Shown in pieces: positions 860 to 42,414 of a DNA stretch of 42,502 bases. The notes beneath the pieces were generated by a model. That model did no database searches. It had not been told where the DNA came from and saw nothing but the letters and a program-made list of their open reading frames with translations. The first letter of the stretch is position 1; each line of letters opens with the position of its first letter. The position numbers and the translations under genes were made by a program. This DNA is from Octopus sinensis (Eukaryota). The stretch spans positions 1 to 42,502 of the forward strand of contig NW_021835344.1 of the NCBI RefSeq assembly GCF_006345805.1. The letters run 5' to 3'.

Positions 860-1000
860 CATCATCAATGCCTTTGCTCTGTTCTGCATTGTAACATTGA
901 GACATGTCTGGTTCTTGCCAGATACCAGTAAACGGTGAACACTTTGTGATAACAGGTTTTGACTTGATGCATTTCTGGATGCCCCATCGTTCTGGAAGAA
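860..1000 (-). CDS. Exon: C-terminal half of HRM domain ([10 protein letters not shown]...[frameshift]...[27 protein letters not shown])
   Basis: Acceptor ttattttttcag and candidate donor gtgagc. GxWxxPDxSxC is the classic HRM ending. The length is 141 nt, but phase 2 to phase 1 needs 3n+2, so the phase-2 entry frame is one base off the CSPF frame. Confidence 0.75.
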
Positions 1001-4000
1001 CTGAAAAAATAAATGTTAAATATTGTCAGTCGAGTTTATTCATTCTGAGGAGAATTTCATCAGTCTCAGAGGAATATAAGAAACCTTCGAACTGGTCGTG
1101 ATTTGAACTCATAATTTAGTGACAGAAGGATAAATGGTGTCTTGCATTTGGGGGAGAAATCTATTATTTACTCCTGACCCCTATCCTCAAAACTAATGTC
1201 AAATATTTTCTAACTAGAGTTCAGATATAAAAACAATATTCCTGCATCTGTTTTTAATTACAATAATTTCTTGTTTTTATGATTATTCAATACAAGATTA
1301 GTTGGAACGGTGTAGGTGATGCAGAATTAAGGAGCCAAGTTGTTAGTTCAAGTTGAATGGGGGAATTAGTGCTAATATTCGCCACCATAGACATCAGTAG
1401 CAACAGCGGCAGCAATGGATTTATGTATATTTTCCTACATATGCACAGATTTGAGTGATTCCACCAGTTGGTCTTGTCTTAAAACTAATAAAGCTCAGCC
1501 TCTGGGAGGAACAATTTAGATGCTTAACCTGTGGAATGACGTGGTAGAAATGAGAGAAGAGAGACCGTGTTACATAGTCTGTGATGAGTGAAATCCCAGG
1601 ATGACCATCATGTACTAGCAAGATATATAGCTCTACAGTAATCATAAAATTGAATAAATAGTATTAGCCTGAAACCAACAGAATCACTGATAGATTCTAT
1701 TGGCTGTATCTAGGTATGTGCTTTCTTTGCTACAATTATTTTGTGAAATTCTGGAACTTACAAGAATCTTTAAATCTTTGAATAATGCAGATTTCAAATT
1801 TTGGCTGCTATTTTGGGCGGGGGTAGTTCGATTACATAGACCCCAGTGGTACTTATTTTATCGATCCCGTAAGGGTAAAAGACAAAGTCGACCCTGGTGG
1901 CATTTGATCTCAGAATGTAAAGTCAGAAGAAATGCTGCTAAGCATTTTGTCCGGCATGGTAACGGTTCCGCTAGCTCTCTACCATAAAGCCTTGTCTAAT
2001 ATTGGTTTCAAATTTTGGCACAAGGCCAGCAATTTCAGGGGAAGGGATAAGTCGTTTACACCAACCCCAGTGCTCAATTGGTATTTATTTCATCGAACCG
2101 AAAAAATTAAAGGCAAAGTCGACCTTGGCGGAATTTGAACTCAGAACATAAAAACGAATGAAATGAAAGCTTTGTATAATATTGGCGACAAAGCAAACCT
2201 AGATAGTTAGGACAAGGCTAAATTATATCAAATAATGTATAAAATGTAAAAATGCTGGGACAAGAGATTGCAACCGATGGACGTTTAATTCTATCTTGTT
2301 AATCTATAAAGCTGTTATCTGCTCTACCAAGTAACATTCTCTCACAATAGGATGACGCTGAAAGCTTCAAATTTTGAGTAGAAATAAATCAATACAAACG
2401 AACCAATGCCTGGTGGCTACATTTCCATGACACGGGATCTCCGCAGTAGTTCCTATTTTTGTCATTGGCCAAGAGAAAGGTCGATTGTTAGTTGATGTTG
2501 TGCTTTCATCACAAACCACTGAAAAAGAAGCAAAATATGGACATGAAAGAAGTCAGTAGTAGTAGTAGTAGTAGTGGTAGTAGCAGCAGCAGCAGTTAAT
2601 GTTGGAAATAAATTGTTTGGACCACCTGCTGGCTGATTTGTGGACAATGATACATGAAGTGTTGCAAACATATACGGAGAGCATATATATTTATTCAAAA
2701 TAGACAGATTTCTAGTTTTTCATTTAGTAGTTTGTAAAGAGATAAATGATTTAGAAATGAATTACAATCCCTTACAACACAAGGACCCCCACCCCAACCA
2801 GGCTCCATGCAATTCTTGGAAGTGTAGTCTATTCTTAACTAAAATGGCGACAATATGATTTTCTCCATATTCTTGCTCTGTTCAAATATTTGAGAAAAAT
2901 TACATTAAAGTGTCCTACTTATTAAAATTCTAATTCATTATTTATGCAGCTGAAGATGGCATTGCATTTAAATTGATGTAATTTTTGTATTGTTCAATTA
3001 AATTTAGCCGATTGAAACTGCATAACTACTTGATATTCTGTAGATTATATATATATATATATTCTTATATATATATTTTCTTATATATTCTTAAAAAACA
3101 ATAAATAAAATAGAAATAGAGGTGTGTGCATATGTATATATATATATATATTTTATATTTTCTCGAGCAATATATAACTGGTTACGGGATATGACTACTC
3201 AGAATGCTAGTCTGTTTCGCGGCCTCTAGTGTTGAATTTCGTCAATATATTGATCACTCTTTAGACATACTGACCGGAAGCGCAAAACCTAATGTACGCT
3301 AGAAATGGGTAGATGTTATATTGATTTGGCGATGGTAAAATGAAATGAATGGAAACGAAGTGAAAATATATCCTTTTCCGGCAATGGGATATGATTTGTT
3401 CCTCTCTTATATCCCTTAGACACTGTTTAAATCGTATGAGCTGTGTGTGTATCTATCGATCCTAATGTAAAATTAACTTGATCACTTCGTACGAAATGAA
3501 TTTTCGCTGAGGAAAATTATTTGCAGCACTAAATAGTTTTCCTGTTTGAATTAAAGCAATTACTGGAATTGTTTGAATTTTTCTGCCCATTAGAGTCTGC
3601 ATCTTCTACTTCTATACAAAATTAGAAGAAAACATTTTTGCCCTCGGTTAATTGGTATAATTAAAAAGAAACTGAGCAAAGACAAACAGTTCCGTAGGGA
3701 CAAGAAACGGAAAAGCGCAAAATAAAATGCTTTTTTTTAAAATTATCCAAGCGTTGAGAAAATGTAAATAAATAGCTGTGTGTGAGAGAGAGAGAGGGGG
3801 AGAGAGTCTGTGTGCTTTGTATCATCTACTGTGGTTGATGACGACAACGACGAAGAGGTTGGTGATTGATGAAGCTAATTATGACGGTAATGATGATAAA
3901 ATTAATAAGAAACACGATACTTACTTTCATCAAGAAATTTCATGTGGCTTTTCTTAACTCCTAAGTTAAGAAATGCCTGGGATTTGTTCAAAGTTTCGGA

Positions 4001-4163
4001 GATATTGTGCCGCAGTTGACTTTCAGTCATTTCGCTAAATACTGTACAGTAAATAGCAAATATTTTATTTCTGTTTGAGCTGAAATAAAAAATAAATACA
4101 TACATGTATGTCGGTATGTATGTATGTATGTAGCTAGCTAGCTAGCTAGAAATATACATACAT

Positions 4164-4202
<39 letters not shown>

Positions 4203-8968: not shown

Positions 8969-9014
<46 letters not shown>

Positions 9015-10286: not shown

Positions 10287-11124
10287 TTCTCTCTGTATCT
10301 TTATATGGGTTTGTTTGTCCTTTGTATAATAAAACATGGATAAAACACTTAAACATTTCATTGAATGTATGAATTAATATATTCTGGGTCACAAGTACAA
10401 CACTGTTGATTATTGTGACGTATAATACATGCGATAAAATCGAATGTTTGGAACAAAAGCAAATAAATTTGAATAAATGTGTTAGAAGCATTTGCTTACC
10501 CACAGTCTTCAACTCTAAATGTTCCCGTCACGGTTGAAAGGTCATGCTCAATCTGAAAAAGCCGGATGTGTATATATATATATATATATATACATTAAAT
10601 TCAAGAAACAAAGCTTGATTTAAAAGCGTTGAGATGTATTGAAAAATAAAGAAATAATTTTATTCTGAAACGCAGGATAATGCTAATGATATAACGTGAA
10701 CCGCATGAAATATCCATAATTTGCAGATAAATCTGTCGTCAGCCAGCTATGTGACTACACCTCACACCCCTGTGATTACGCTTCAAGTGCTTTACCATTA
10801 AGCTAAACTGCGCGAACGACAAATACTTCTGCAAAGTTAGGCTATATACATCTAGCTTTATAAGACGCGTAATCTGGCCGCCGACAGAGTTTTCGGCAAC
10901 AGGTGAATACTTTATCCTGTTCATGCTATACTATTAGCATTATCCTGCGTTTGAGAATATAATTATGTATAAATATATTAGCTTGACACTCGGTAAAGTG
11001 GGGGAAATGAGAGGGTTTTTAATGTTCCGAGCATATCTCTTTTTCAGAAAGGAAAACGAAAATGTTGAGAAGAAAAATATTACCAAAAGGAAGTGTGTGA
11101 TTACATATGTTCTTATGTGTGTGT

Positions 11125-15308: not shown

Positions 15309-18300
15309 TTATCATTCCCTTTCTTCCTGTCGCTCTCTTCGTGTATCGGCTATCAATGCCTGCACATGGATGATTGGTTCCATACATCGTTAGGACCTTT
15401 CTTGACTTCCTGTCCAACTCCTTTAGCTTCTCCTCTGTCCACTTCAGTTTTCCAGCGTCATTCCGAACTACTGCGACTGCGTGCGAGTTTATCGCCGAAA
15501 TTATGTTCCAGGCATTCAGCTTTCAAACCAATATTTTGATCACTCGCCAAAAGTGCTCTCTTTTATTCTTTTCCTTCATGTCGTGGTGTTTGATTCCATC
15601 TGTGATCTGTGAGTGTGTGTGTGTGTTAGAGAGAGAGAGAGCGGGGGAGAGGGAGAGAGGGAGAGAGAGCATTGCAAATAGTATACACACATCAAAATAT
15701 TTTCCCGTATATTAATTACTATAAAATGTTCTTATTAACTATCAATTTGTAATAAACTTGTTAGTGTTATATTAGACAATAAATAACACTTACCAATGAA
15801 ATCATTCTTGTTACATAAGTGTCCGACGCAACAACCAGTACAAGACGTGCCATTCGTCCGTTTATTGCATGTAAGGGTATTGTTTCTCATAGCTTCAACA
15901 CATTTTCTGTATGTGCTGCAGGACCTTTCAGTCTTCAGTTTAGCACCGTTCATTGATATTGCGAATCGGCATACAGGCTGTAATAATAGATATGAAAATT
16001 ATACACTACAACAACAATATTTATTAGGACGATTACTGCTAATTACAGCAACAACAACAGAAACAACACCACTGGGGATGTTTACCATGCAAGTAAGTTT
16101 AATCATTGCTTTAAAATACCAAAAGCAATAAATGAAACCGTAAAAGAGTTGCCGAATTGTTGAAAGTTAACAGCATAAGTAAAATTCCGTAAAAGTTATT
16201 GCTATTTAGTTTAAAAATCATGTTTTAATGCTTACAGTGTCCAAACTCTCGGATCACAAGGAGATATGGCCATCGATCACGGTCTTTAGCAAAACCGCAT
16301 CGCACTGTCACCCGTCACCAAACTTAAAATAGGTCAAATTATCCCAATAAAGATGTATCAGTTCTCTAAAATTTCTTCTTACTGGAGGAATGCTCAAGAG
16401 GAATTTTTCATATAAAATTTACGGAAAATCATGCGTACAAAACTCACCAACAAGAGTAACTAATATGCCTATACCCAAAGATGAAAATGAAATATAATTG
16501 TCAGATTGAACTCCTCAGTCCAAGCAAATAAAACAGAAAATACATAAAACGAACACAAGAGAAACTTCGTTTTATTTTGCAAGTATATTTTATATGAAAA
16601 CACGGTATATTAGTATAAAATTTGGAGAGAAAACAACCAAGGTCTTGTTAACTTAATAAGGGACATTCTGAAAGCGAAAAATATCAGAAATGAAGAATAT
16701 TTAAAGAAAAGAATCCATCACGAAAACGCAATTAATAATCGCAAACACCTAACAATAATAAAAGCAATGAAAATGTAGACATTGAAGTTAGAAATAAGAT
16801 TTGCATTGCCTTAGTTTGAAATTGAAACTCGTTTCTTCCAATGTTGGAAAAGTTTTAGAAAGAAAATTGGATCTCCCAAACTGAGTGAGGATGTCATGAA
16901 AAAATAACCAATGATAGTGTCCGAAGGCTGGCGTCTTCAAAAGAGCCAATGGAGTCTGTGATTGCAAATGAATGAATCATTACATAAGCTAACTCAGCTT
17001 CAAGAAAACAGAAAGGTCTGAGATCAGAACAGACAATGAAACAGGCAACAGATTGCAGCCATGCTCTTATGTCACGCTCTATTCTCCTATATTCTCGTAG
17101 ATCAGTTAATGTGAAGCATTGATCTGTGTCATTACCGGTGTCTTTTATTGTTTCTCTTGTGTTTCTTTCACCAATGTACAACTGTGTATTCAGAGATATG
17201 CCTGGCAATTTTAATTTGTGTTTTAGCTGCGTTTAATCGTATAGCTTTCACCTATTCCTGTTGAAATAATATGACCCCCATCCGTTATGTTCTGTGAAGC
17301 TTATTGTACTTCTTGATGTGAGGGCAGATTTAATCTGTTTCGAACATTTTATAATCTTGTCTATCAAACAACCACTTTTGCTATGGCCAACAGACGAAGG
17401 AGACGGTCATTTACTTCTTAACTTTTTCCTTAATCCGCTCCCTTTAATCTCTGCAAGATGGTAGGGCCACATCCAACATGCAGTTATCCCCTCTAAGGTT
17501 AGTGGCCCGAGGTCATTCGACAAGGAATCTTAATCCCAAGTTGACTTCTGGCCACATACATTCATACATCCTACTCTAAGGACAGCCATGTTTGTCGGAG
17601 AAAGTCACTCTAAGTTCGTGTGTTCGTTCTTGAATAGGGATTCCTGGACAGGGTAGAACGTTGCGTCCTTGAACAAGGCACTTCATTTCACTTTGTCCCA
17701 GTCTAATCAAGTGAAATGTGTCCCAACCTAGTGATGTTCATCTATTTCTCTCTTCAATCGTCACATCCTTCTCGTCCCATTGAGTCATGAATAAGAAGAT
17801 CGACAGGGTGTATGTATGTCTACGCAGGCGCATAAAAAAACTAGCGAAAGCATAGTACAATCTATGTGGACTTAATGGCTTTCGAGTGACGGTTGTGGAT
17901 ATATTTTAACGAAAAGGAAGAAAGTAATATTCCAGTTTACCTCTGTTCCTGGACAGCTTGTCACTTCATTGCATATGATTCCTGAACTTGTTTGACACTG
18001 TAAATTCCGTTGAAATAACGAGTAATCTACAGAATACAAGTAAATATCTGTATTTATGAACCAAATAATGCAATGCATAGCAATAACAAGAAATATTTTC
18101 TTCAGATGTAAAAACAAATGTATGCGTGTTAGTATTGAAATCAATACATGTTAGACATATAAAGCAAATTATTAACAAAGACTATAAACCTATTTTCATG
18201 TTCATTCGGAAACGTTTCAATAATGTCACAAATTCAACTGAGAGAAGCATGAAAGCCACTTGTTGTCCTTTTAGTATTCTGATGTAACAAACACGTGAAA

Positions 18301-22710: not shown

Positions 22711-23679
22711 TGATGGTTTGTGTGATACAGTTGAATCTATAAGTTCGTTGGAGAGAAGATGTGAATGTAAAGCGTGCGAATGGTAAAACGTTTATTCCTC
22801 ATATCTTTATCTATAGTTTCCCTTTCATAAGACATGATATCGCAAGCTTCAGAGAATAACCCGGATTTTATTAGTATTAATAATAAAAGAAAAAACGAAA
22901 CGAGAATTTTACTTACTTTGACATTGCGAATAATCCAGTATAGGTATTCGTTTCCCTGAGCCTTCCTGACACGTGCCAAAAACAGCAACAGTTCTGTTAT
23001 AGACTTCTTTAATATACTTAACGAAGGCTGGCAAGTGACATCCACACCTCTTAAGGTTATTGTTTCGAGGTTACTGTAATAATAAAGAGAACTCTGAATG
23101 CGTTTCAGATCAACAGAGAAATTCCTATGTGATTTGACAAGAAACAAAGATTATAAAATTTGAGCAGGTTTATAAACGCTATGACATTCATTTTTCTAAG
23201 TGTTGTTAATAACATCAATATTGCGAAATGGTTTCTAGTAGAAAGTGGAAGCACTAAGGTTCTATTCTCTTTTAGCTTAGATATTGAATAATAAGGTACC
23301 TTTAAATAAGATTACTAGCCACTTGAAACGATTCTATTTTATTGTAGTTTAGGGACATTTTAGTGTCGGGAATTTGGTGGTAGGGATCTTGCGCCGCTCT
23401 GTCTGAGAAAACTCGTTTAGATGGGCGGTTTTGGCGCTAAGAAGGACATGTTTATTCTATGTAGCAACTGGTTTTAAAACTAGAGACAGATTTCAGTGTT
23501 GTACAATTTATTGCTTGAGCGGCACAGACATGTATAGTAATACTCCTAATTAAGAAAGGGGAAATTAATATTCATTTTTGGTATATCAATTTGAATATTT
23601 TCAGTGTTTTTCAAAAAAGAGCAACAGCAAGAACAATAGCAACAACAACACAAATACAACAACAACAACAATAATGATG

Positions 23680-26582: not shown

Positions 26583-28006
26583 TGTGTGTGTAAATATATA
26601 TATATATATATATATATAACACAGAAGAATGGAGATATCATACATATTGAACCATCCCGTTTCTGTCAGATTGGCAAATCACAAAATCTTGCGATATAGT
26701 AATACTGCGTATTAATCGACCCAACAGTTACAGGGTGTTCTCTTTTCATGTTCTGAGTTCAAAATTTCGAGGACGATTTTACCTTTCATGTTTTTGGGGT
26801 CGATGAATTAAGTACCAGCCGAGCACTACGGTGGATGTAATCGACAAACCCCCAGCCACAAAATTGCAGGCATTGTGCTTATCGTAGAAAGAATATTTTA
26901 GCCCCTTGATTACCAAATTACCAAATGGCTTCGTGGTAGAAATACAGAGGCAATTACAGCAATCATCAGAAATATTTGAATGGAATTTTTGTGGATCTTC
27001 TTCCCTCTGATAACTCCGTTGTCATAAGGATATAATAAGTAATAACAATATATATATGTGTGTGTGTGTATGCTTATATATGCACATACGCATACACACA
27101 CAGGAAAATTTATATATGTGTGAAAGAAGGTTTGTATGTAGGCCACTCTCTCGACTCCAGTTAATTATGTGTATTTATAAACATGGGGTAAACTAGATCA
27201 AATCAACCTTCTGATATTTGAACATAAACTTTTCGATAATAAAACACAGTGCTCGGAAATCATGTTGATCCACTGAAATTTAAATCAAATCATTGTTGTT
27301 TATTACCAACAACATTTAACGAGGAATTGAGAATTTTATGACCTCATTTTATTATTTTTATTTTCTTATAACCAAAAAGAACTTGTTTGCTTACATTGTA
27401 GCTATGCTGGGAAGGAATAAGAAAGCGCCATCTTCATATTTTTCTATTGGGTTGTTATGCAAATATCTGAAAAAGAGACAAATATTACACACTTTAAAAT
27501 AAGTAAAAGTAAATAAATATGTTTTTCCTGTTCAGTACTAAATTGCGTTTCAGTCAACATTAACAGGGTAAATGCTGATATTACACACTATATTGTTTAT
27601 TTCTCTTTATAGTTCTCTGGGAAGTGTTGTTTGAACAAGAATAGGTTCCTTCAATCTAACTTAATTATCCTAAGTGAAAACCTGATAACAAAACAGCAAA
27701 AGATGGAAGGGAATAAAATACAAAAATAAAAACAATAATAAGGAGACTTTCTTATGTGCACAATATGGGTTTTAGTCAATATTCTCATCTATAGTAGAAA
27801 TATCATTCTCTATACATGCAAGGTTCTGTGGCAGGAAAGTTACTTCTCACATCAATGGATTCTTTAGTCCAACTGTGTGGCACCTTGGACAAATAACATT
27901 TACTATAACCTTGGGTCAACTAAGCGTTGTGAGTAAATTTGCTGCAGGAAACTGTGTGGATTCCCTTCGTATATATATAAATATATATATATACATATAT
28001 ATATAC

Positions 28007-31000: not shown

Positions 31001-34000
31001 ACATTTTTATGCAGACAATTATCAACTGACAGTCATTGACATGTTCAGACTCAATCAAATAAATATAACACGAATATGAGAACTGAATATGATTTACAGT
31101 AATAGAGAGTGAGGAAACATGGAAATAAGGGGATATTAAATTTAAAGACATAGTATATTCCTCATGTATAAACGACAACATTGAAAGAACTTACAATTTC
31201 TCTAAGTTGTGAAGGCCTTGAAACATCTCTTTTTCAATCCTTGAAATTTTATTGTTGTAAAGAGATCTGAAGCAGGAAACAATATTGGTTAGATTGACAT
31301 AGTGTGAATTCCGATAACATATTCAATATTGTTCTTTATGAAGAGGGACAAAATTATAGGAAAATAATACGAGAAGAAGAAGAAAAGGAGAAGACGAAGA
31401 AGAAGAAGAAGAAGGGGAAGAGAGGAAGGGGAAAGAAGAGTCATGGAGGAAGAGAAGGGGGAGAGAAGTAGAAGAAGGAGGAGTTGGAGGAGGAGGAGGA
31501 GGGGAGGTGAAGAAGAATCAGGACAGGGAAGGACAAGGATATGTAGGGGGGAGGAAAATAGGAGAAGGTGCAGAGGGTAAAGTATAAGAGGATATAGAAG
31601 ATTAAAATCTGGAGGAGAAAAAGAAGAAGTAGAAGGGGGAGGATGGGGAGGAGAAGAAGAAGAAGAAAAAGAAGAAGAAGAAGAAGAAGAAGGAGAAGAA
31701 GAAGAAGAAGCGGGAAAAAAGAAGGAGAAAAAGAAAAAGAAAGAGAAGAAGAAAGAAGAGGAATATAGGTGGAGGCGGAGGGGGAAGGAGGAGAAGAAGA
31801 AGAAGAAGAAGACAAAGGAGGAGGAGGAGGAAGGGGAAGTAGAAAAAAAGGAGGAGAAGGAGGAGGAGGAGAAGTAGGAAGAGAAGAAGAAGAAGAAGAA
31901 GAAGAAGAAGAAGAAGAAGAAGAAGAAGATGACACTTTGAAAATCATGGTGTTCAAGACGAAACTGAAATTGTTCTCAAGATATCAGGAAATAATTCAAG
32001 GATAGAGCGATAAATTTTGGGCAAGAAGACATGGCTGAAAAATCAGGGAATATACGGAATCAGAAATCAACATATTCAAACGCACTCATTCGCATTCTTA
32101 CATTCAAAGTTTCAACGACGGAATGCGGTATGCACACTCACATGACACATATTCCCACTCACCCTTGTGGAAATATGGTGAGAGAGATTATTTATTTCAT
32201 ATCGCTTCATCGTCACAAGAATATTAGAAAACACACGCTTACAAGAAATATATCAGCAGTTTAATTGTATCAGGCCAAATATTCCAGCTTACAAGTACAG
32301 TAAGTATTTCAGGTTTACAGATAGAATGTATGTGACTATATTATTCGAATATATATTTTCCGCTTCCACTTCAGTTGCTCTGTTACATAAATAACGTAAA
32401 GTGAATGACAAAATTCGAAGTTGAATGATAATATCGAAACACGAAGGAGAATATTGGAATAAGAAATGGAGGAGGATGCAAAATATAAAATAAAGGAATA
32501 ATATAGTCACATTTCACACAGAACTACATTTATATATGAACATACACATATACTTCAGCTAAAAATATTTGATGCAAACATGTAAACTCACAAACGTTAC
32601 CATTTCTAATACAAATTCATATCAAAATCATTGAAATTTGGGGAACAAAAATGAGTTATTGAGATGCGAATTGAAACAAAGCAACTACAATAAAGGAACA
32701 TTATATTTTTCCTATTATTTCACTTTCTCTCTAAAATGCTCTCTCTTTCATTTACATTGTCTCGCTCTCTCCTATTCTCTTTGTATCTTCCTAAATCTTG
32801 TTCATTCTACAAATTCGAATTGGTTTTGTTTGGTGGAGTCTGAAATATTATACATTTGTGAGCTTATATATCAGCATCAATTATTACTTTCGGAAAATAG
32901 TATCAAGAAATTAAACGAACTTACAGTTCTTTGAAATTTGAAATCCCCGTGAATGTACCTTCTTTGATGGTTGCAATGCTGTTCCCTCCAAGATCTCTAT
33001 AGCAGTAAAGAAAGAGTAAAATAGATTATATGTAAAATATTTGTGATACGACATCAAACACTTTGACTTCAGAATGAAAGAAAGAAAAAGAAGAAAGATA
33101 ACGAAGAAGAAGAAGAACTAGAAAGGAGAAGGAGAAGGAGAAGTAGAAGAAGAAGAAGAAGAAGGAAAATAGACGAGGAGGTGGAGGAGGTGGAGGAGGA
33201 GGTGGAGAGGCGGGGTTTTAGGAGGACGACAAAGGAAGGGATGACTGAGCAGGGGGCCGCTGGGGTAGCATCAGAAGGAGCAGGAAGAGCTGGAGACTGA
33301 GAATAAGAGGAAGAATTGGAAGAGAATGGAAAAGAGGGAGACCAGTGACAAAGCAGAAAGTACAGAGAAGAAAAAGAAGAAAAAGAATAAGAAGAAGAAG
33401 AAGAAGAAGCAGAAGAAGAAGAAGAAGAAGACAAAGAAAAGGAAGAAGTAGAAGAAGAGGAACATGAAGAAGATGAAGAAGGAAAGAAGAAAAAGACGAA
33501 GAAGATGAAGAAGAAGAAGAATAGTAGAGAACGAAGAAATTGAAGAAAAAGGAGGATGAGTAGGACGAAGAGGGGAGGTTGAAGAGGAGAATTGCAATAA
33601 GAAGAAGAAGAAGAAAAGTAGGAGAAGAGGTTGAGGAGAGAGGGGAATAGGAGATTGCAAAAGAAGAAGAACAAACAACAACAACAACAATAGCAAAAAA
33701 TTTATTTTGGGTGGAAGTATGGATAAATACCACACACGGCAGCACAGAATCAAGAGAACAATGTGTAAGAAAATAGTAGCTAAACTTATATTAATAGTGC
33801 AGATACATACATACATATGAACTACACATATATATTTTCAGAATATAATTTTTATGCAGACAAGTATCAACTGACAGTCATTGACATGTTCAGACTCAAT
33901 CAAATAAATATGACACGAATAGAGAACTGAATATGATTTACAGTAATAGAGAGTGATAAAACATGGAAATAAGGGGGATATTAAATTTAAAGACATAGTA

Positions 34001-37000
34001 TATTCCTCAGTATAAACGACAACATTGAAAGAACTTACAATTTCTCTAATTTGTGAAGGCCTTGAAACATCTCTTTTTCAATCCTTAAAATTTTATTTCT
34101 GTAAAGAGATCTGAAGCAGGAAACAATATTGGTTAGATTGACATAGTGTGAATTGCGATAACATATTCAATATTGCTCCTTATTTAAAGGGACACAATTA
34201 TAGGAAAATAATACGAAATGAAGAAGAAAAGGAGGAGACGGGAAAGAAGAAGAAGCAGAAGAAGAAGAAGAAGAAGGAGAAAAAGAAGAAGGAGAAGATG
34301 ATGAAGGAGGAAGAGGAGGAGGAGAATAACAAAAAGGAGAAAATAGGAAGAAGAAGAAGGAGGATGAGGAGGAGTAGAAGAAGTAGAAAGTGGAAGAAGA
34401 AGAAGAAGAAGGAATAGAAGAAGAAGAAGAAGGGGAAGAAGACGAAAAAGAAGGAGAAGAAAAAGGAGAAGCATGAGGATGGGGGAGGGAGAATTACAAG
34501 AAGAAGAAGAAGAAGGAGAAGAAGAAGAAGACAAAAGGAGGTGGGGGAGTGGGAGAGGTAGAATTACAAGAAGAAGAAGAAGGAGAATGAGGAATTGGAT
34601 GCAGAAGTAAAAGGAGGAGAATGAAGGGGAGGAGAAGAAGTAGAAGAAGGAAAAAAGAAGTAGAAGAAAGAGATGAAGAAGAAAACGAATAAGAAGAAGG
34701 AAGACGAGGAGGAAAAAGTAGAAGAAGAACATAAAAAGAAGCAGGATCGGTGACGGGTAGGGGTGGAAGAGAATTACAAGATGAAGAAGGAGGAGGAGCG
34801 GGAGGGAGTGGAGGAGGAAGAGAATTACAAGAAGAAAATGAAGAAGGAGCAGAAGGAAAAAGTAGAAGAAGGAGGAGGAGGACGAGGGGAAGAAGAACAA
34901 AAGAAGAAGAAGAAGAAGAAGAAGAAGAAGGAGAGAAGAAAAAAGGGAGCAGGAGTGAGGAGTAGGAAGAAGAGAAGGTGAAGAAAAAAAAGAAGAAGAT
35001 GAAGGAGAAGGAGGAGGAGGAATAGCAGGAGAGAAGAAGAAAGAAGAATAAGAAGAAGAAGAGAAAGAAGATACATTGAAAATCATGGTCTTCAAGACGA
35101 AACTGAAAATGTTCTCAAAATATCAGGAAATAATTCAAGGATAGAGCGATAAATTTTGGGCGAGAAGACATGGCTGAAAAATCAGGGAATATACGGAATC
35201 AGAAATCAACATATTCAATTGCACTCATACGCATTCTTATATTCATAGTATCAACGACGGAATGCGCTATGCACACTCACATCACACATATTCCCACTCA
35301 CCCTTGTGGAAATATGTGAGAAGATTATTATTTCATATCGCTTCATTGTCACAAGAATATTAGAAAACACAGGCTTACAAGAAACATATCAGCAGTTTCA
35401 TTGTATCAGGCCAAATATTCCAGCTTACAAGTACAGTAAGTATTTCAGGTTTACAGATAGAATGTATGTGACTATATTATACGAATATATATTTTCCGCT
35501 TCCACTTCAGTTGCTCTATTACATAAATAACGGGAAGTAAATGACAAAATTCGAAGTTGAATGATAATATCGAAACACGAAGGAGAATATTGAAATAAGA
35601 AATGGAGGAGGATGCAAAATATAAAATAAAGGAATAATATAGTCACATATCACACAGAACTACACTTATATATGAACATACACATATACTTCAGCTAAAA
35701 ATATTTGATGCAAACATGTAAACTCACAAACGTTACCATTTCTAATTACAATTCATATCAAAATCATTGAAATTTGTGGAACAAAAATGAGTTATTGAGA
35801 TGCGAATTGAAACAAAGCAACTACAATAAAGGAACATTATATTTTTCCTATTATTTCACTTTCTACCTCAATTTCTCTCTCTCTTCTCTCTTTGTGTCTC
35901 GCTTACTTACTCCCTCTTGTATATCTTCCTAAATCGTGTTCATTCTACAAATTCTAATTCATTTTTTTTGATGGAGTCTGAAATTTTATACAATTGTGAG
36001 CTTATATATCAGCATCAATTATTACTTTCGGAAAATAGTATCAAGAAACTGAACGAACTTACAAGTAGTTTAAATTTGAAAGCCCCGTGAATGCTCCTTC
36101 TTTGATGGTTGCTATGTTGTTGTAACGAAGATATCTATAGCAGTAAAGAAAGAGTAAAATAGATTATTTGGAAAATATTTGTGATACGACATCAAACACT
36201 GTGACTTCAGAATGAAAGGAATAAAAAGAAGAAATATAACGAAGAAGAAAAAGAAGAAGAAGAAGAAGAAGGAAGAGGAAGAGAAGAAGAAGAAAAAGAA
36301 GAATAAGGAGGAGGAAGAGGAGAAGAAGAAGAAGAAGAAGTAGAAGAAAGAGATGAAGAAGAAAACGAATAAGAAGAAGGAAGACGAGGAGGAAAAAGTA
36401 GAAGAAGAACATAAAAAGAAGCAGGATCGGTGACGGGTAGGGGTGGAAGAGAATTACAAGATGAAGAAGGAGGAGGAGCGGGAGGGAGTGGAGGAGGAAG
36501 AGAATTACAAGAAGAAAATGAAGAAGGAGCAGAAAGAAAAAGTAGAAGAAGAAGGAGGAGGAGGAGGAGGAGAAGAAGAACAAAAGAAGAAGAAGAAGAA
36601 GAAGAAGAAGAAGGAGAGAAGAAAAAGGAGGAGCAGGAGTGGAGGAGTAGGAAGAAGAGAAGGTGAGAAAAAAGAAGAAGATTAAGGAGAAGGAGGAGGA
36701 GAATAGCAGGAGAGGAGAAGAGAAGAAGAAAAGAAGAAGAAGAAAAGAGATACATTGAAAATCATGTCTTCAAGACGAAACTGAAAATGTTCTCAAAATA
36801 TCAGGAAATAATTCAAGGATAGAGCGATAAATTTTGGGCGAGAAGACATGGCTGAAAAATCAGGGAATATACGGAATCAGAAATCAACATATTCAATTGC
36901 ACTCATACGCATTCTTATATTCATAGTATCAACGACGGAATGCGCTATGCACACTCACATTCACACATATTCCCACTCACCCTTGTGGAAATATGGTGAG

Positions 37001-40000
37001 AGATTATTTATTTCATATCGCTTCATTGTCACAAGAATATTAGAAAACACAGGCTTACAAGAAACATATCAGCAGTTTCATTGTATCAGGCCAAATATTC
37101 CAGCTTACAAGTACAGTAAGTATTTCAGGTTTACAGATAGAATGTATGTGACTATATTATACGAATATATATTTTCCGCTTCCACTTCAGTTGCTCTATT
37201 ACATAAATAACGGGAAGTAAATGACAAAATTCGAAGTTGAATGATAATATCGAAACCGAAGGAGAATATTGAAATAGAAATGGGGAGGATGCAAATATAA
37301 AATAAAGGAATAATATAGTCACATATCACACAGAACTACACTTATGATATGAACATACACATAACTTCAGCTAAAAATATTTGATGCAAACATGTAAACT
37401 CACAAACGTTACCATTTCTAATACAAATTCATATCAAAATCATTGAAATTTGTGGAACAAAAATGAGTTATTGAGATGCGAATTGAAACAAAGCAACTAC
37501 AATAAAGGAACATTATATTTTTCCTATTATTTCACTTTCTACCTCAATTTCTCTCTCTTTCTCTCTTTGTGTCTCGCTTACTTACTCCCTCTTTGTATCT
37601 TCCTAAATCGTGTTCATTCTACAAATTCGAATTCATTTTGTTTGATGGAGTCTGAAATTTTATACAATTGTGAGCTTATATATCAGCATCAATTATTACT
37701 TTCGGAAAATAGTATCAAGAAACTGAACGAACTTACAAGTAGTTTAAATTTGAAAGCCCCGTGAATGCTCCTTCTTTGATGGTTGCTATGTTGTTGTAAC
37801 GAATATCTATAGCAGTAAGAAAGAGTAAATTAGATTATTTGGAAAATATTTGTGATACGACATCAAACACTGTGACTTCAGAATGAAAGGAATAAAAAGA
37901 AGAAATATAACGAAGAAGAAAAAGAAGAAGAAGAAGAAGAAGAAGAAGAAGAAGGAAGAGGAAGAGAAGAAGAAGAAAAAGAAGAATAAGGAGGAGGAAG
38001 AGGAGAAGAAGAAGAAGAAGTAGAAGAAAACGTAGAAGAAGAAAGGAGAAGATAAAGGAGTAGAAGACCTAGAAGAAGAAAAAGAAGAAGAGGAGGCGGA
38101 GGAGGCGGAGAAGCGGAGCAGGAGGAGAGGTGGGGATGTTAGGAGGAGGACAAAGGAATGGATGATTGAGGAGGGGCAGCTGGGGATAGCAGCAGAAGGA
38201 GCAGGAAGAGCAGGAGGATGAGAATAAGAGGAAGAATTGGCAGAGAATGGAAAAGAGGGAGACCATTGAAGAAGCAGAAAGTACAGAGAAGAAAAAGAAG
38301 AAGAGGAAAAGAAGAAGTAGAACACGAAGAAGAAGAAGATGAAGTAGAAGAAGAAGAAGAGGAAGAAGAAGAAGACGACGAAGAAGAAGAGGAACATGCA
38401 GGAGATGAAGAAGGAAAGAAGAAGACGAAGAAGATGAAGAAGAAGAAAAAAAGAATGCAAAGAAGAAGACAAAGAAGAAGTAGAACATGAAGAAAAGTAA
38501 CAAGAAGAAGAAGAAGACGAAGTAGAAGAAGAATAACAGGAAGAAGAAGCAGAAGCAGAAGAAAGAGATGAAGAAGCAGAAGAAGAAAAGAAGAAGAAGA
38601 AGAAAAGAAAAAGAAGGAGGAGAAGGAGCAGAAGGAGGAGGGGAGGTTGGAAGAAGAAGAAGAAAAAGAAGGAGAAGAAGAAGAAGAAGAAGATGAAAAG
38701 AAGAAGAAGAAGAAGAAGAAGAAGAAGAAGAGAAGAATACATTGAAAATCATGTTGTTAAAGACGAAACTGAAAATGTTCTCAGAATATCAGGAAATAAT
38801 TCAAGGATAGATCGATAAATTTTGGGCGAGAAGACATGGCTGAAAAATCAGGGAATATACGGAATCAGAAATCAACATATTCAAACGCACTCATACACAT
38901 TCTTATATTCATAGTATCAACGACGGAATGCGGTATGCACACTCACATCACACATATTCCCACTCACCCTTGTGGAAATATGGTGAGAGAGATTATTTAT
39001 TTCATATCGCTTCATTGTCACAAGAATATTAGAAAACACACGCTTACAAGAAATATATCAGCAGTTTCATTGTATCAGGCCAAATATCCCAGCTTACAAG
39101 TACAGTAAGTATTTCAGGTTTACAGATAGAATGTATGTGACTATATTATTCGAATATATATTTTCCGCTTCCACTTCAGTTGCTCTATTACATAAATAAC
39201 GTGAAGTGAATGACAAAATACGACGTTGAATGATAATATCGAAACACGAAGGAGAATATTGAAATAAGAAATGGAGGAGGATGTAAAATACAAAATAAAG
39301 GAATGATATAGTCACATTTCACACAGAACTACACTTATATATGAACATACACATATACTTCAGGTAAAAATATTTGATGCAAACATATAAACTCACAAAC
39401 GTTACCATTTCTAATACAAATTCATATCAAATTCATTGAAATTTGGGGAACAAAACTGAGTTATTGAGATGCGAATTGAAACAAAGCAACTACAATAAAG
39501 GAACATTATATTTCTCCTATTACTTCACTTTCTCCCCAAAATTCTCTCGCTTTCTTTCACATTGTCTCAATCTCTCATATTCTCTTTGTATCTTCCTAAA
39601 TCGTGTTCGATCCTCAAATTTGAATTAATTTTGTTTAGTTCAGTCTCAAATTTTATACATTTGTGAGCTTAGATATCAACATCAATTATTACTTTCGGAT
39701 AATAGTATCAAGAAACTGAACGAACTTACAAGTAGTTTAAATTTGAAAGCCCCGTGAATGCTCCTTCTTTGATGGTTGCTATGTTGTTGGAACCAAGATA
39801 TCTATAGCAGTAAAGAAAGATTAAAATAGATTATATGGAAAATATTTGTGATACGATATCAAACACTGTGACATCTGAATGAAAGGAAGAAAAAGAAGAA
39901 AGATAACGAAGAAGAAGAAGAAGAAGAAGAAGAAGGAAGAGGAAGAGAAGAAGAAGAATAAAAAGAAGAATAAAGAGGAGGAAGAGGAGAAGAAGAAGAA

Positions 40001-42414
40001 AAAGTAGAAGAGGAGGCGGAGGAGGCGGAGCAGGAGGAGAGGTGGGGATGTTAGGAGGAGGACAAAGGAATGGATGACTGAGGAGGGGCAGCTGGGGATA
40101 GCAGCAGAAGGAGCAGGAAGAGTAGGGGGATGAAAAATAAGAGGGAAGTATTGGAAGAGAATGGAAAAGAGGGAGACCATTGAAGAAGCAGAAAGTACAG
40201 AGAAGAAAAAGAAGAAGAAGAAAAGAAGGCAAAGAAGAAGACAAAGAAGAAGTAGAACACGAAGAAAAGTAACACGAAGAAGAGAAGATAGAGTAGAAGA
40301 AGAATAAGAGGAAGAAGAAGAAGAAAAAGAAGTAGAAGAAGCAGAAGCAGAAGAAGGAGTAGAAGAAGAAGAAGAAGAAGAAGAAGGAAGAGGAGGAAAA
40401 AGGAGGAGGAGGAGAATGATGGGGAAGAATAAGTAGGAGAAGATGAAAAAGAAGATGAAGGAGGAGGAGGATGAGAATAACAAAAAGAAGAATATAAGAA
40501 GAAGAAAGAGGAGTAGGAGGAGAAGTAAATGTTGAAGTAGAAAGTAGTAGAAGAAGAAGAAGAAGAAGGAGAAGAAGTATAAGAAGAAAAAAAGAGTAGA
40601 AAAATGAGAAGAAGAAAAGAAAAAGGAGAAGGAGGAAACGAAGAAGAAGACGAATTAGAAGAAGACGCAGAATAAGAAGAAAAAGATGCGGGAGAGGAGG
40701 GGGAGGAGGAGAATTACAAGAAAAAAAGAGGAGGAGGGGCGGAGAGGATTGGGAAGAAAGAAAGAAGACGAAAAAAGAAGTAGAAGAGGAAGTGGAAAAA
40801 GGAGGAGGAAGCAATGAAGTGGAAAAGTAGGAGTAGAAGAAAAAGAAGAAGAATAAGAAGAAGGAGGAGGAGGAGGAGGCGTAGTTGAAAAAGTTGAAAG
40901 TAGAAGAGGATGTAGGAGAAGAAGACGAAGAAATAAGTAGAAGCGATAGAAGAAGAAAAGAATAAGGAGAATGAGAAGAAGAAGAAGAAGAAGAAGAAGA
41001 AGACTACGAAGAATGAAAAGAGTAGAAGAAGCAGAAGCAGAAGAGGAGTAGAAAGAAGAAGAATACAAGAAGAAAAAGAAGAAGAAGAAAGAAAATTAGA
41101 AGAGGAAGAGGAGGAGGATCAGGGGGAGGAGGAGAAGAAGTAGAAAAAAGAAAAGAAGAAAAAGAAGAGAAGAGAAGAAGAAGCAGAATAAGAGATGAAG
41201 AAGAAGAGAAGAAGAAGAGAAGAAAAAAGAAGGAGGAAAGAGGCATCAGAGATGGTGAGGTTGGAAGAAGAAGAAGAAAAAGAAGAAGATAAGAAGAAGA
41301 AGAAAAGAAGAAGAAGAAAAGAGAAGAAGAAGAAGAAGAAAAAAGAAGAAGAAAGAAAGAAGATACATTGAAAATCATGTTGTTAAAGACAAACTGAAAT
41401 GTTCTCAGAATATCAGAAAATAATTCAAGGAGAAGAACGATAATTTGGGCGAGAAGACATGGCTGAAAAATCAGGGAATCACGGAATCAGAAATCACATA
41501 TTCAAATGCACTCATACGCATTCTTATATCATAGTATCAACGACGAATGCGCTATGCACACTCACATCACCATATTCCCACTCACCCTTATGGAAATATG
41601 GTGAGAGATTATTATTTCATATCGCTTCATTGTCACAAGAATATTAGAAAACACACGCTTACAAGAAATATATCAGCAGTTTCAATGTATCAGGCGAAAT
41701 ATTCCAGCTTACAAGTACAGTAAGTATTTCAGGTTTACAGATAGAATGTATGTGACTATATTATTCGATTATATATTTTCCGCTTCCACTTCAGTTGCTC
41801 TCTTACATAAATAACGTGAAGTGAATGACAAAATTCGAAGTTGAATGATAATATCGAAACACGAAGGAGAATATTGAAATAAGAAATGGAGGAGGATGTA
41901 AAATATAAAATAAAGGAATAATATAGTCACATTTCACACAGAACTACACTTATATATGAACATACACATATACTTCAGCTAAAAATATTTGATGCAAACA
42001 TGTAAACTCACAAACGTTACAATTTCTAATACAATTCATATCAAAATCATTGAAAATTTGGGAACAAAAATGATTTATTTAGATGCGAATTGAATCAAAG
42101 CAACTACAATAAAGGAACATTATATTCTTCCTATTATTTCAATTTCTCTCTCAAATTCTCTCTCTTTCTTTCACATTGTCTCGCTCTCTCCTATTCTCTT
42201 TGTATCTTCCTAAATCTTGTTCATTCTACAAATTTGAATTGATTTTGTTCGGGGCAGTCTGAAATGTTATACATTTGTGAGCTTATATTTCAGCATCAAT
42301 TATTACTTTCGGATAATAGTATCAAGAAACTGAAGAACTTACAAGTATTTTAAATTTGAAAGCCCCGTGAATGCTCCTTCTTTGATGGTTGAAATGTTGT
42401 TGGCACCAAGATTT
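860..42414 (-). CDS. Partial multi-exon gene: adhesion-GPCR-like ectodomain (LRR x8 + LRR-CT + LU/Ly6-like + SEA-like + HRM); 5' end and GAIN/7TM not identified in window
   Basis: Exons in transcript order: 42414-42343, 39801-39730, 37806-37737, 36134-36063, 34110-34039, 32996-32925, 31266-31195, 27466-27395, 23073-22917, 18026-17941, 15977-15794, 11639-11557, 10552-10500, 4079-3925, 2518-2404, 1000-860. All have AG acceptors and GT donors. Phases chain consistently (LRR exons 2-2, then 2-1, 1-0, 0-1, 1-0, 0-2, 2-1, 1-2, 2-1). The joined translation gives recognisable LRR, CxC-type LRR-CT, CCxxxxCN and HRM motifs. Three exons need small indel corrections. Confidence 0.85.
1795..1985 (+). mobile_element. 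SINE copy, same family as 1-197
   Basis: gattacatagacccc...cttattttatcgatcccg...aaagtcgacc...tttgatctcagaatgtaaag. Confidence 0.75.
2005..2165 (+). mobile_element. SINE copy, same family, tandem with the previous copy
   Basis: ggataagtcg...ccccagtgctcaattggtatttatttcatcgaaccg...ggcaaagtcgaccttggcggaatttgaactcagaac. Confidence 0.75.
2404..2518 (-). CDS. Exon: N-terminal half of HRM domain (M)[37 protein letters not shown](C)
   Basis: Acceptor cttctttttcag and donor gttcgt; 115 nt, phase 1 to 2. Matches the C..W.xT.xG.....PC....A.R.C HRM pattern. Confidence 0.88.
3925..4079 (-). CDS. Exon: SEA-like domain part 3 [51 protein letters not shown]
   Basis: Acceptor tattttttatttcag and donor gtaagt; 155 nt, phase 2 to 1. 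Fits both neighbouring exons. Confidence 0.85.
4487..4539 (-). ncRNA. Minimal type-I hammerhead ribozyme motif, minus strand (also at 5033-5085, 5580-5632, 6123-6175, 6668-6720)
   Basis: Exact reverse complement of the + strand motif (tgagaacgtacgtttc...tcatcagctca). These copies are sense to the host pre-mRNA. Confidence 0.8.
7075..7127 (+). ncRNA. Minimal type-I hammerhead ribozyme motif (also at 7621-7673, 8166-8218, 8715-8767)
   Basis: Sequence reads tgag-CTGATGA-t aga agt...act aa tct t-GAAA-c gtac g-T T-ctca. The catalytic core is intact. Stem I is UGAG/CUCA, extendable to AAGG/CCUU; stem II is AGA-AGU/ACU-UCU; stem III is 2 bp with a palindromic ACGUACGU segment. Predicted cleavage is after GUU at 7123. 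Confidence 0.8.
10500..10552 (-). CDS. Exon: SEA-like domain part 2 [17 protein letters not shown](G)
   Basis: Acceptor ggctttttcag and donor gtaagc; 53 nt, phase 0 to 2. Bridges the 11557 and 4079 exons exactly. Confidence 0.82.
10663..10957. mobile_element. MITE (~295 bp) with ~38-bp imperfect terminal inverted repeats and TA flanks
   Basis: Left end ta|ttctgaaacgcaggataatgctaatgatataacgtgaac. The reverse complement of the right end reads ta|ttctcaaacgcaggataatgctaatagtatagcatgaac. No coding capacity. Confidence 0.75.
11557..11639 (-). CDS. Exon: SEA-like domain part 1 (G)[27 protein letters not shown]
   Basis: Acceptor caatccatag and donor gtgagt; 83 nt, phase 1 to 0. Confidence 0.82.
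12066..12686 (+). mobile_element. 5'-truncated Penelope-like element: RT-linker and GIY-YIG endonuclease, frameshifted
   Basis: [31 protein letters not shown]...[22 protein letters not shown]...[20 protein letters not shown]...TLDAHIW...KWKLL..A..Y..G...CDLC..E..EIL...LLNK.SE...C.H; three 1-nt frameshifts; 5' end directly after (TA)n. Confidence 0.9.
12760..14790. repeat. Compound (TA)n/(TG)n/(TATG)n microsatellite field with two ~100-bp duplicated islands (~13855-13957 and ~14005-14108)
   Basis: Direct inspection; agactagccttctaagagtgtagacatgaa occurs twice. Confidence 0.9.
15310..15607 (-). mobile_element. R4/Dong-clade non-LTR retrotransposon fragment (post-RT region), degenerate
   Basis: [66 protein letters not shown]....D..Y.KR..G.KGMISV; flanked by microsatellites. 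Confidence 0.85.
15794..15977 (-). CDS. Exon: LU/Ly6-uPAR-like domain C-terminal part [61 protein letters not shown]
   Basis: Acceptor ctattattacag and donor gtaagt; 184 nt, phase 0 to 1. Ends in CxxCCxxxxCN, the three-finger/LU signature. Confidence 0.92.
17585..17850 (+). mobile_element. Degenerate CORE-like SINE
   Basis: gcgtccttgaacaaggcacttcatttcactttgtcccagtc resembles the SINE CORE segment. Confidence 0.4.
17941..18026 (-). CDS. Exon: LU-like domain N-terminal part (N)[28 protein letters not shown]
   Basis: Acceptor ttgtattctgtag and donor gtaaac; 86 nt, phase 1 to 0. Joins in frame to the LRR-CT exon and to the 15977 exon. Confidence 0.85.
18674..18815 (+). mobile_element. 3' end of an RTE-like LINE: terminal C2H2-type finger, short 3' UTR and (TATG)n tail
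   Basis: [27 protein letters not shown] matches the CxxCxxxCxSxxGLxSHxRxH ending of RTE-type ORFs. Confidence 0.65.
18850..20069 (-). mobile_element. R4/Dong-clade LINE, 5'-truncated degenerate RT region
   Basis: HSWMLEAL...[15 protein letters not shown]...FFVDDLK.YAK...[12 protein letters not shown]...[10 protein letters not shown]...WTLDEIR....KSRKILT...FH....[13 protein letters not shown]....FECRII...KTMHGY; (TACA)n on both sides. Confidence 0.9.
20255..20445 (-). mobile_element. 3' end of an R4/Dong-like LINE followed by (TACA)n
   Basis: [17 protein letters not shown] resembles the ...IQKxALLGT..ILRK C-terminus of restriction-like-endonuclease LINEs. Confidence 0.5.
21415..21620 (-). 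mobile_element. SINE copy, same family as 1-197
   Basis: Reverse complement contains gtcgattggatcgaccccagt...cgaaaggataaaagcaaagtcgacctctgtggaatttgaacacagaacgtg...ctgccagcttgccgcc. Confidence 0.8.
22917..23073 (-). CDS. Exon: LRR C-terminal cap NLE[+1 indel][49 protein letters not shown]
   Basis: Acceptor ttctctttattattacag and donor gtaagt. N-x-C-x-C...C...C is the LRR-CT pattern. The exon is 157 nt and needs 158 for phase 2 to 1; for example, one missing A in gaaac. Confidence 0.8.
23672..23771. repeat. (AAT)n microsatellite
   Basis: About 33 near-perfect AAT units. Confidence 0.95.
23772..24040 (+). mobile_element. Short 3'-terminal fragment of an R4/Dong LINE inserted at (TAA)n
   Basis: [28 protein letters not shown]...VEHL/(K)[16 protein letters not shown] is the conserved C-terminus of R4/Dong ORFs. 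Confidence 0.85.
24041..24760. repeat. Compound (GAT)n microsatellite with GGT/TAT/AAT variants
   Basis: Direct inspection; this is the source of the spurious poly-Met ORF. Confidence 0.95.
25490..26045. repeat. 167-bp tandem minisatellite (~3 units plus a shorter lead unit)
   Basis: agagatgaca at 25491, 25621, 25788 and 25955 (spacings 130, 167, 167). Confidence 0.9.
26700..26900 (-). mobile_element. Degenerate SINE copy, same family as 1-197
   Basis: Reverse complement contains gtcgattacatcc...ctggtacttaattcatcgacccc...tttgaactcagaacatg. Confidence 0.65.
27395..27466 (-). CDS. 72-nt LRR exon [24 protein letters not shown] (last LRR before the cap)
   Basis: Acceptor tttgtctctttttcag and donor gtaagc; phase 2 to 2; LxxNxIxxxxxxAF pattern. 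Confidence 0.9.
27820..28270 (+). mobile_element. CORE-type SINE with internal (TA)n(TG)n tract
   Basis: Degenerate tRNA-like head, then gtggcaccttggacaaa...actataaccttggg, a microsatellite, and the tail tttacgtcccccgtaacttag...gcatggccgca...actgaaacaag. Confidence 0.7.
28930..30040 (-). mobile_element. Penelope-like reverse transcriptase fragment, interrupted by a CR1-type insertion
   Basis: 30040-29686: [11 protein letters not shown]...[14 protein letters not shown]...[15 protein letters not shown]. 29236-28930: [19 protein letters not shown]...YCRYI(YG)INI...[29 protein letters not shown]. Confidence 0.8.
29237..29685 (+). mobile_element. 3' end of a CR1/L2-group LINE with (AAACT)n tail
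   Basis: LSYEGR.KTL.../TRRRGDLI...LQGHSEKL...F.LN.RR.AFSVRV..PWNKLP.EIV.......FK..LD; tail aaactaaactaaact. Confidence 0.9.
30085..30345. repeat. (GAA)n microsatellite
   Basis: Direct inspection. Confidence 0.95.
31195..31266 (-). CDS. 72-nt LRR exon, type A: [24 protein letters not shown]
   Basis: Acceptor tttcctgcttcag and donor gtaagt; phase 2 to 2; typical 24-aa extracellular LRR. Confidence 0.92.
32925..32996 (-). CDS. 72-nt LRR exon, type B: [24 protein letters not shown]
   Basis: Acceptor ctttactgctatag and donor gtaagt; phase 2 to 2. Confidence 0.9.
34039..34110 (-). CDS. 72-nt LRR exon, type A: [24 protein letters not shown]
   Basis: Same splice context as 31195-31266; 4 substitutions relative to it. 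Confidence 0.92.
36063..36134 (-). CDS. 72-nt LRR exon, type B: [24 protein letters not shown]
   Basis: Acceptor ctttactgctatag and donor gtaagt; phase 2 to 2. Confidence 0.92.
37737..37806 (-). CDS. 70-nt copy of a type B LRR exon (2-nt deletion relative to 36063-36134; frameshifting if real)
   Basis: Identical to 36063-36134 except gtaacgaatatct versus gtaacgaagatatct on the + strand; splice sites intact. Confidence 0.6.
39730..39801 (-). CDS. 72-nt LRR exon, type B: [24 protein letters not shown]
   Basis: AG/GT intact; phase 2 to 2. Confidence 0.92.
42343..42414 (-). CDS. 72-nt LRR exon, type B: [24 protein letters not shown]
   Basis: AG/GT intact; phase 2 to 2. Confidence 0.92.

Follow-up and report, generated by a model that had tools for sequence, protein, structure and literature searches.

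A mollusc-wide, adhesion-GPCR-related gene family with LRR, LU, SEA-like and HRM domains and its decaying and 7TM-less paralogue, both probable, in Octopus sinensis

The window, by which we mean the whole stretch of 42,502 nucleotides of Octopus sinensis DNA analysed here, is AT-rich, eukaryotic and laden with repeats, and it carries on its minus strand sixteen exons that run from 42414 to 860. These were located by tblastn with nine Octopus relatives and their limits were set on canonical AG/GT, and each of the sixteen has both a canonical AG/GT site and a tblastn match to annotated Octopus proteins. The exon set and span are identical to those of the initial annotation, from the start of the first exon at 42414 to the end of the last at 860. 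The exons encode, in this order, eight LRRs, an LRRCT, an LU domain, an alpha/beta (SEA-like) domain and an HRM, and the same order, also proposed from the start, recurs in the annotated relatives P0056-P0062 and P0083. That the window carries a genuine gene with many exons, from a family related to adhesion GPCRs, is supported, and its signal-peptide/LRRNT exon is situated past the window end, above LRR exon 1. The features are as follows.

42343..42414, minus strand: LRR exon 1, 72 nt, phase 2/2
39730..39801, minus strand: LRR exon 2, 72 nt, in a type A unit
37737..37806, minus strand: LRR exon 3, 70 nt, with a 2-nt deletion
36063..36134, minus strand: LRR exon 4, 72 nt, type A
34039..34110, minus strand: LRR exon 5, 72 nt, type B
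32925..32996, minus strand: LRR exon 6, 72 nt, type A
31195..31266, minus strand: LRR exon 7, 72 nt, type B
27395..27466, minus strand: LRR exon 8, the last repeat
22917..23073, minus strand: LRRCT-like cap exon (CxC...C...C), 157 nt, with a 1-nt deletion
17941..18026, minus strand: LU (three-finger) exon 1, with a Cys-to-Ser codon at 17988-17986
15794..15977, minus strand: LU exon 2, C-terminal CCVGHLCN, intact, its protein 100% identical to L002
11557..11639, minus strand: SEA-like (alpha/beta) exon 1
10500..10552, minus strand: SEA-like exon 2
3925..4079, minus strand: SEA-like exon 3
2404..2518, minus strand: HRM exon 1
860..1000, minus strand: HRM exon 2, with two 1-nt deletions
30090-30345, 31652-31929, 34220-35071, 36241-36748, 37912-38737 and 40201-41363: (AGA/GAA)n tracts

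LRR exons 1-7 are carried, one per unit, by a tandem duplication with units of 1.7-2.8 kb, the type A units being 91-98% identical, intron included, and the type B units 86%; all seven are 72 nt long and in phase 2 on both sides, with the exception of LRR3 and its 70 nt. On the conceptual protein of the window, the LRR block is matched by Pfam LRR_8 at E 1.9e-81, and LRR families are the sole Pfam matches there. The cap exon is called LRRCT-like from its CxC...C...C pattern, which is kept in 23 distinct relatives, and Pfam LRRCT gave no match on it. LRR exons number at least eight in the window and four in L002, the collinear O. vulgaris locus (array at 35524-47112), while P0083 has 12 LRRs, and NCBI lists many isoforms for the family, such as "X13". 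Copy-number change of the LRR cassette, and possibly alternative splicing, is suggested among these near-identical paralogues. The repeat units each contain a long degenerate (AGA/GAA)n tract (30090-41363 in the window), and these tracts cause a strong purine skew and spurious long Ser/Leu/Phe-rich open frames. The location of LRR exons inside tandem units rich in (AGA)n might be read as a sign that there is no gene at all, merely chance open frames in repeat-rich DNA, but we give this reading practically no credence in view of tblastn E-values down to 1e-49 against annotated proteins and of exon limits and phases kept across paralogues and species.

In homology searches with the window, the family matches were all proteins of O. 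vulgaris, O. sinensis or O. bimaculoides, and the protein encoded by the window was absent from the collection of 5.8 billion proteins; the window copy is unannotated in that collection, since none of its proteins occurs there. The public model P0005 ("E3 ubiquitin-protein ligase MIB2-like") takes an intronic open frame at 28995-29123 (minus strand) for an exon and fuses LRR exons of the family to ankyrin repeats, and P0015 is a similar fusion; both have the appearance of chimeras that span the array. The window locus shows why the Octopus array is poorly modelled, its public models being fragmented or chimeric and named "slit-like", "MIB2-like" or "ADGRG6-like".

Outside the coding unit, a 545-bp satellite (4195-8962, unstranded) occupies the intron that separates SEA-like exon 2 from exon 3. 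Its units are 99-100% identical to each other, about five in one direction and then about 3.5 in the opposite one, with a head-to-head flip near 6957; the satellite could stem from a genuine fold-back expansion or from faulty assembly. This intron is long because of the satellite, and measures 2.1 kb in L002. Open frames resembling decayed pieces of retroelements, with RT-like and GIY-YIG-like motifs recognised by eye, are found at 19492-19967 (minus strand), 29307-29582 (plus strand) and 12189-12548 (plus strand), and Pfam returned nothing at E 0.01 on these intronic frames. There are also an ATG/ATA-rich microsatellite that gives rise to a 256-aa Met/Ile open frame and a tandem repeat of about 167 bp in three copies (24031-24801, 25595-26126).

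The LU domain proposed initially is supported at the level of the family, where a 19-sequence family profile searched against the PDB found six matches, with LYPD1 the best at E 0.016 and ACVR1, LYPD6 and SLURP1 also present, and all six are three-finger proteins. Pfam matches on this domain were all weak (Activin_recp in 5 of 19 sequences, UPAR_LY6_2 in one of 19), and AF2 modelled it with low confidence (pLDDT about 30). As in the Ly6/uPAR proteins (LYPD1, LYPD6, SLURP1 and the activin-receptor ectodomain), there is an LxCxxC motif at the N-terminus and a CCxxxxCN motif at the C-terminus. Unlike these proteins, the domain is embedded in a multidomain protein, contains 12 cysteines instead of 8-10 and is matched by Pfam only marginally, and in the window copy the second cysteine has been lost to a serine.

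As regards the alpha/beta domain, a first AF2 run on LU, SEA and HRM together, with 20 Octopus-only sequences, reached a pLDDT of 44.5 and was confident in the alpha/beta domain only, the LU and HRM parts being unusable, and Foldseek found generic ferredoxin-like folds at E of about 1e-2. With mollusc homologues added, the model of the alpha/beta and HRM domains (residues 275-458 of P0056, a protein whose SEA-like domain matches that of the window at 93% identity) had a mean pLDDT of 79.6. Its alpha/beta part, at pLDDT 88-95, has the ferredoxin-like SEA fold, in the order beta-alpha-beta-beta-alpha-beta, with strands at 3-12, 39-46, 51-60 and 92-95 and helices at 22-33 and 65-77. Foldseek aligned this model with 6V55_A, the ectodomain of zebrafish Gpr126/ADGRG6, at E 1.1e-5 over 187 columns, which was the sole match at E 1e-3 or better, the next one lying at E 2e-2. 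The SEA-like call of the initial annotation is thereby upheld. At the sequence level, Pfam SEA matches 4 of 27 relatives, and in the Haliotis homologue P0102 it covers residues 342-434 at E 5.5e-5, with 23.7 bits against a gathering score of 26.4; the alpha/beta profile found only chance ribosomal-protein matches among PDB sequences. Read directly, the sequence between SEA strands 2 and 3 lacks the hydrophobic SVVV context of the G/SVVV autoproteolysis motif. This motif is also missing from many SEA domains, that of Gpr126 included.

The SEA-like domain is followed directly by the HormR/HRM domain, which is the arrangement of an ADGRG6-like ectodomain. The HRM had at first been called a textbook case; the call itself stands, with Pfam HRM (PF02793) matching 19 of the 27 relatives recurrently at profile positions 6/7-64 (best E 3.7e-6), but the adjective does not, as every member tested scores below the gathering score of 26.2 bits (22.2 for the P0056 segment, 23.4 for P0107 of Biomphalaria and 20.4 for P0083). 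The family profile of this domain found nothing among PDB sequences even at E 10, so that the sequence by itself is no proof of an HRM, and the HRM of the window copy is itself frameshifted.

An exhaustive HMMER search with the LU-SEA-HRM profile gave 66 matches among 1.84 billion representative proteins. Full-length LRR-LU-SEA-HRM-GAIN-GPS-7tm_2 receptors, mostly named "ADGRG6-like", were found in O. bimaculoides, Haliotis, Saccostrea, Biomphalaria, Nucella and Plakobranchus, the O. bimaculoides members being P0086, which has a Death domain, P0088, and P0089/P0133, which go under the name ADGRA3. A further receptor, P0090, of 1155 aa, is encoded on contigs that were built from public sequencing runs and measure about 4.2 kb, short enough that they may represent a spliced transcript. 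In the more distant paralogues and the mollusc homologues the 7TM is matched at E 1e-23 to 6e-52, and that of P0076 is nearest, among solved structures, to ADGRG2, ADGRG6 and ADGRG4; the GPS is matched at E 1e-13 in paralogues P0026, P0028 and P0042 (motif CxCDHLTSFA), and the HL/T site is conserved in the GAIN-bearing receptor paralogues. The Death domain of P0086, a protein of 1283 aa, is cytoplasmic and occupies residues 1203-1277 (Pfam E 3.3e-6), which is unusual in adhesion GPCRs.

An octopus-specific, co-localised and fast-evolving expansion of adhesion GPCRs was already described by Ritschard et al. 2019 (PMC6408891), who reported LRRs in 5 of 22 members, a Death domain in one, and expression within axial nerve cord, suckers and skin; P0086 agrees with that one Death-bearing member. 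The idea that the architecture was cephalopod-specific and unannotated has therefore to be abandoned, with the same architecture annotated in abalone, oyster and snails and the octopus expansion published in 2019. The gene of the window is a new member, in all likelihood a pseudogene, of a family already known and annotated.

Two loci collinear with the window bear on whether it holds the first half of a receptor. The first one, L002 of O. vulgaris (CATOCA020000001.1:3728851-3817595), is collinear with positions 1-30343 of the window at 94-98% DNA identity, has all its exons intact and encodes P0059 ("slit homolog 1 protein-like isoform X13"). Its gene comprises a signal peptide/LRRNT, four LRRs, LRRCT, LU, SEA and HRM, continues with second-SEA exons at 70594, 71021 and 77223, and ends at 78745, 13 kb after HRM exon 2. 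Full-length receptor queries found no GAIN, GPS or 7TM exon anywhere in the 88.7 kb of this locus. The second one, L001 of O. sinensis (CM016887.1), is 95-97% identical to the window over positions 1-4086 and shows the same second-SEA continuation, which closes with a stop in the terminal exon. In both intact loci, what follows the HRM is thus a degenerate second SEA-like module, with about 18 residues missing, then the short tail SSSTGNGTEDRTAETNF and a stop, as in P0014, P0056, P0057 and P0059; P0083, a complete model of 844 aa that has a signal peptide but lacks a TM, likewise ends in the tail and a stop.

The window copy belongs with these 7TM-less proteins. Its HRM is 94-98% identical to those of P0014, P0056, P0057 and P0059, versus 79% or less to the GAIN-bearing members, and it has the 9-aa deletion after the HRM that is common only to proteins continuing into the second SEA-like module. 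P0056 is 94% identical across the full LRRCT-HRM query, the other nearest proteins being P0057, P0058, P0059 and P0061, all of Octopus vulgaris. By analogy with the collinear loci, the gene would continue past window position 1 into the second SEA-like module and the tail.

The initial annotation had instead seen a hidden adhesion GPCR, the window being the 5' half of a true receptor whose GAIN/GPS/7TM exons lie past position 1. Full-length receptors with the same ectodomain do exist (P0086, P0088, P0089, P0090 and the mollusc homologues), P0060 joins LRR-LU-SEA-HRM to the start of a GAIN, and paralogues with and without a 7TM share the phase-1 boundary (…IDxG|) that closes the HRM exon. Nevertheless, L002 and L001 both run into the second SEA-like module and stop, the DNA downstream of HRM exon 2 has no GAIN or 7TM over 23 kb in L002 and about 28 kb in L001, and the deletion and HRM identities of the window copy are those of the 7TM-less subgroup. 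With no secretin/adhesion-type 7tm_2 exon and no GAIN with a GPS (HL/T) in the window, in L002 or in L001, we regard a receptor here as very improbable.

In L001, the LRR array and SEA-like exon 3 abut head-on in opposed directions, with a 100-N gap (9845-9944) between them. An apparent inversion of the LRR array relative to the HRM part of this O. sinensis locus was considered and rejected as a scaffolding artefact, the gap being exactly at the junction. An internal Met directly behind the gap serves as the start of the O. sinensis model LOC115226217 (P0014), which is probably a truncated annotation.

The window copy departs from its relatives above all in its reading frame. Its exons had been thought to chain in phase, which fails at four frame-breaking indels (one in LRR3, one in LRRCT and two in HRM exon 2) when the junctions of the relatives are used. 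In LRR3, compared with a neighbour unit of 97.8% identity, a 2-nt deletion turns ATATCTTCG into ATATTCG at 37806-37800. In the LRRCT exon, a 1-nt deletion in an A run changes GAAAAC into GAAAC at 23066-23062, where the relatives have E-N (LENNNL). In HRM exon 2, ATGGCA has become ATGCA at 972-968 and CAAAAG has become CAAAG at 946-942. The strict splice product is therefore correct through LRR1-2, loses its frame at LRR3 (70 instead of 72 nt), regains it only via the LRRCT lesion, inside that exon, breaks next in HRM exon 2 and ends there at TGA 867-865. The LRRCT deletion and both HRM exon 2 deletions are not present in the collinear L002, and the latter two are not present in L001 of O. sinensis either. 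Moreover, codon 17988-17986 of LU is AGT (Ser), where 27 of 27 relatives have the second LU cysteine (CQTCSG). An in-phase path is possible only by skipping LRR3, by using an internal LRRCT AG that has no pyrimidine tract, or by shifting the HRM exon 1 donor to the GT at 2395, 8 nt past the conserved donor, and none of these three workarounds is used in any relative.

The exons of the window copy also diverge at least as much as the rest of the locus, namely 2.5% vs. 2.05% overall in the comparison with L002 and 2.9% vs. 1.8% in introns in the comparison with L001, and pN/pS is 1.27, with 10 nonsynonymous and 2 synonymous changes. Between the window and L002, 1-nt indels are about symmetric (52 vs. 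41), and all three of the exonic ones are in the window. Given this exon divergence, the pN/pS, the exonic indels confined to the window and the lost LU cysteine, real decay is favoured. Most likely, the window copy is a decaying, pseudogenised paralogue of the soluble form and not a hidden receptor, and its lesions are, on balance, more probably real than errors of assembly.

Several points count against decay. Three of the four indels (GG to G, and AAAA to AAA twice) are 1-nt contractions of short homopolymers, which are typical errors of long-read assemblies. LRR3 could be skipped without loss of frame, since all LRR exons are 72-nt and phase-symmetric, and a pN/pS near 1 would be equally expected under the diversifying selection reported for the octopus expansion (PMC6408891). 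A second reading of the locus, to which we assign a minor but appreciable probability, is consequently that of an intact, functional gene for a secreted LRR-LU-SEA-HRM-SEA' protein, in which the four indels arose as errors of assembly, with a Cys-to-Ser change that is either tolerated or an error too. The three homopolymer contractions speak for it, as do splice sites that are all canonical, 12 of 16 exons that are clean, and alpha/beta exons and an LU exon 2 whose protein is 96-100% identical to that of the intact gene in L002. Against it, the near symmetry of indels with L002 means that the window sequence is not visibly poorer, the exonic indels are in the window alone, the LRR3 lesion is a 2-nt deletion outside any homopolymer, the Cys-to-Ser change is a transversion in a column invariant in 27 relatives, and the exons are not more conserved than the introns. 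The asymmetry of homopolymer indels (7 vs. 2 with L001 and 26 vs. 17 with L002) is too weak to separate error from decay.

Turning from the decaying copy to the family, we propose that the window covers the greater part of one paralogue in a tandem array of Octopus, and that this array derives from a mollusc-wide adhesion-GPCR family, the architecture of which is LRRNT-LRR(n)-LRRCT-LU-SEA-HRM-GAIN/GPS-7TM. In a young sub-branch, represented in O. vulgaris and O. sinensis, the GAIN-7TM half would have been replaced by the truncated second SEA-like module, the short acidic tail and a stop, and the intact relatives of the window copy are accordingly predicted to be secreted, ectodomain-only proteins. 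In these relatives the capped LRR solenoid may bind a protein partner, whereas in the receptor paralogues LU, SEA and HRM may form a stalk coupling it to the tethered agonist of the GAIN domain; the soluble forms might then act as decoys or competitors for the partners of the receptor paralogues, or as soluble ligands.

A bolder version of this scheme holds that octopuses, at least O. vulgaris and O. sinensis, evolved a clustered family of secreted, 7TM-less LRR-LU-SEA-HRM-SEA' ectodomains by partial duplication of an ADGRG6-like adhesion-GPCR gene, that the interchangeable, phase-symmetric 72-nt LRR cassettes diversify binding and that the window copy is functional, with lesions that are assembly errors; as a whole we consider it unlikely. 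If it were true, duplication of LRR cassettes (at least eight in the window, four in L002 and 12 in P0083) together with alternative splicing would diversify binding specificity. In the literature covered, we found neither a molluscan ADGRG6-like lineage in which LRR-LRRCT-LU replaces CUB-PTX before the SEA-HormR-GAIN-7TM core, nor its Octopus branch with 7TM-less derivatives that are presumably secreted. Both points are independent of the window copy, itself probably non-functional.

Among known systems, the nearest one is L002, with which the window shares exon order, junctions and phases, a 2-aa LU deletion (IICNEVTSC) and a 12-residue variant; P0083, P0057 and P0061 are 7TM-less models akin to its P0059. 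Unlike L002, the window has at least eight LRR exons instead of four and a 4.8-kb satellite of its own; the exons of L002 are all intact and its gene end is seen, while the second SEA-like module and tail of the window copy lie out of reach. The family comprises the same proteins as "group 3" of Ritschard et al. 2019 (PMC6408891), for example, the O. bimaculoides GPR126-like protein with LRR, GPS and 7TM. That study selected its members by their 7TM, of which the window copy gives no evidence, and reports only LRR, GPS and Death domains, LU, SEA, HRM and the 7TM-less derivatives not being described in it.

Vertebrate ADGRA2/3 (GPR124/125), to which the gene was first compared, also have LRR and LRRCT upstream of HRM-GAIN-7TM; moreover, the GAIN of paralogues carries a precomputed PF26588 match, with the UniRef name "ADGRA2/3 GAIN domain", and one O. 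bimaculoides member is called ADGRA3 by NCBI. In ADGRA an Ig domain separates LRRCT from HRM; the family has LU and SEA in that position, and no Ig family appeared in any Pfam scan. The ADGRA analogy is retained as a secondary comparison. ADGRG6 is the nearer analogue, since the Gpr126/ADGRG6 ectodomain was the sole significant Foldseek match. It differs in its CUB-PTX start, which is LRRNT-LRR-LRRCT-LU in the family (Pfam shows LRR families only, and no CUB or pentraxin, N-terminal of LU), in a sequence identity of only about 14%, and in the GAIN/7TM that the sub-branch of the window lacks. What vertebrate ADGRG6/GPR126 and the molluscan family share is the SEA-HormR tandem placed directly N-terminal to GAIN, the same tandem that is contained in the Gpr126/ADGRG6 ectodomain structure 6V55 (Leon et al. 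2020, PMC6954182).
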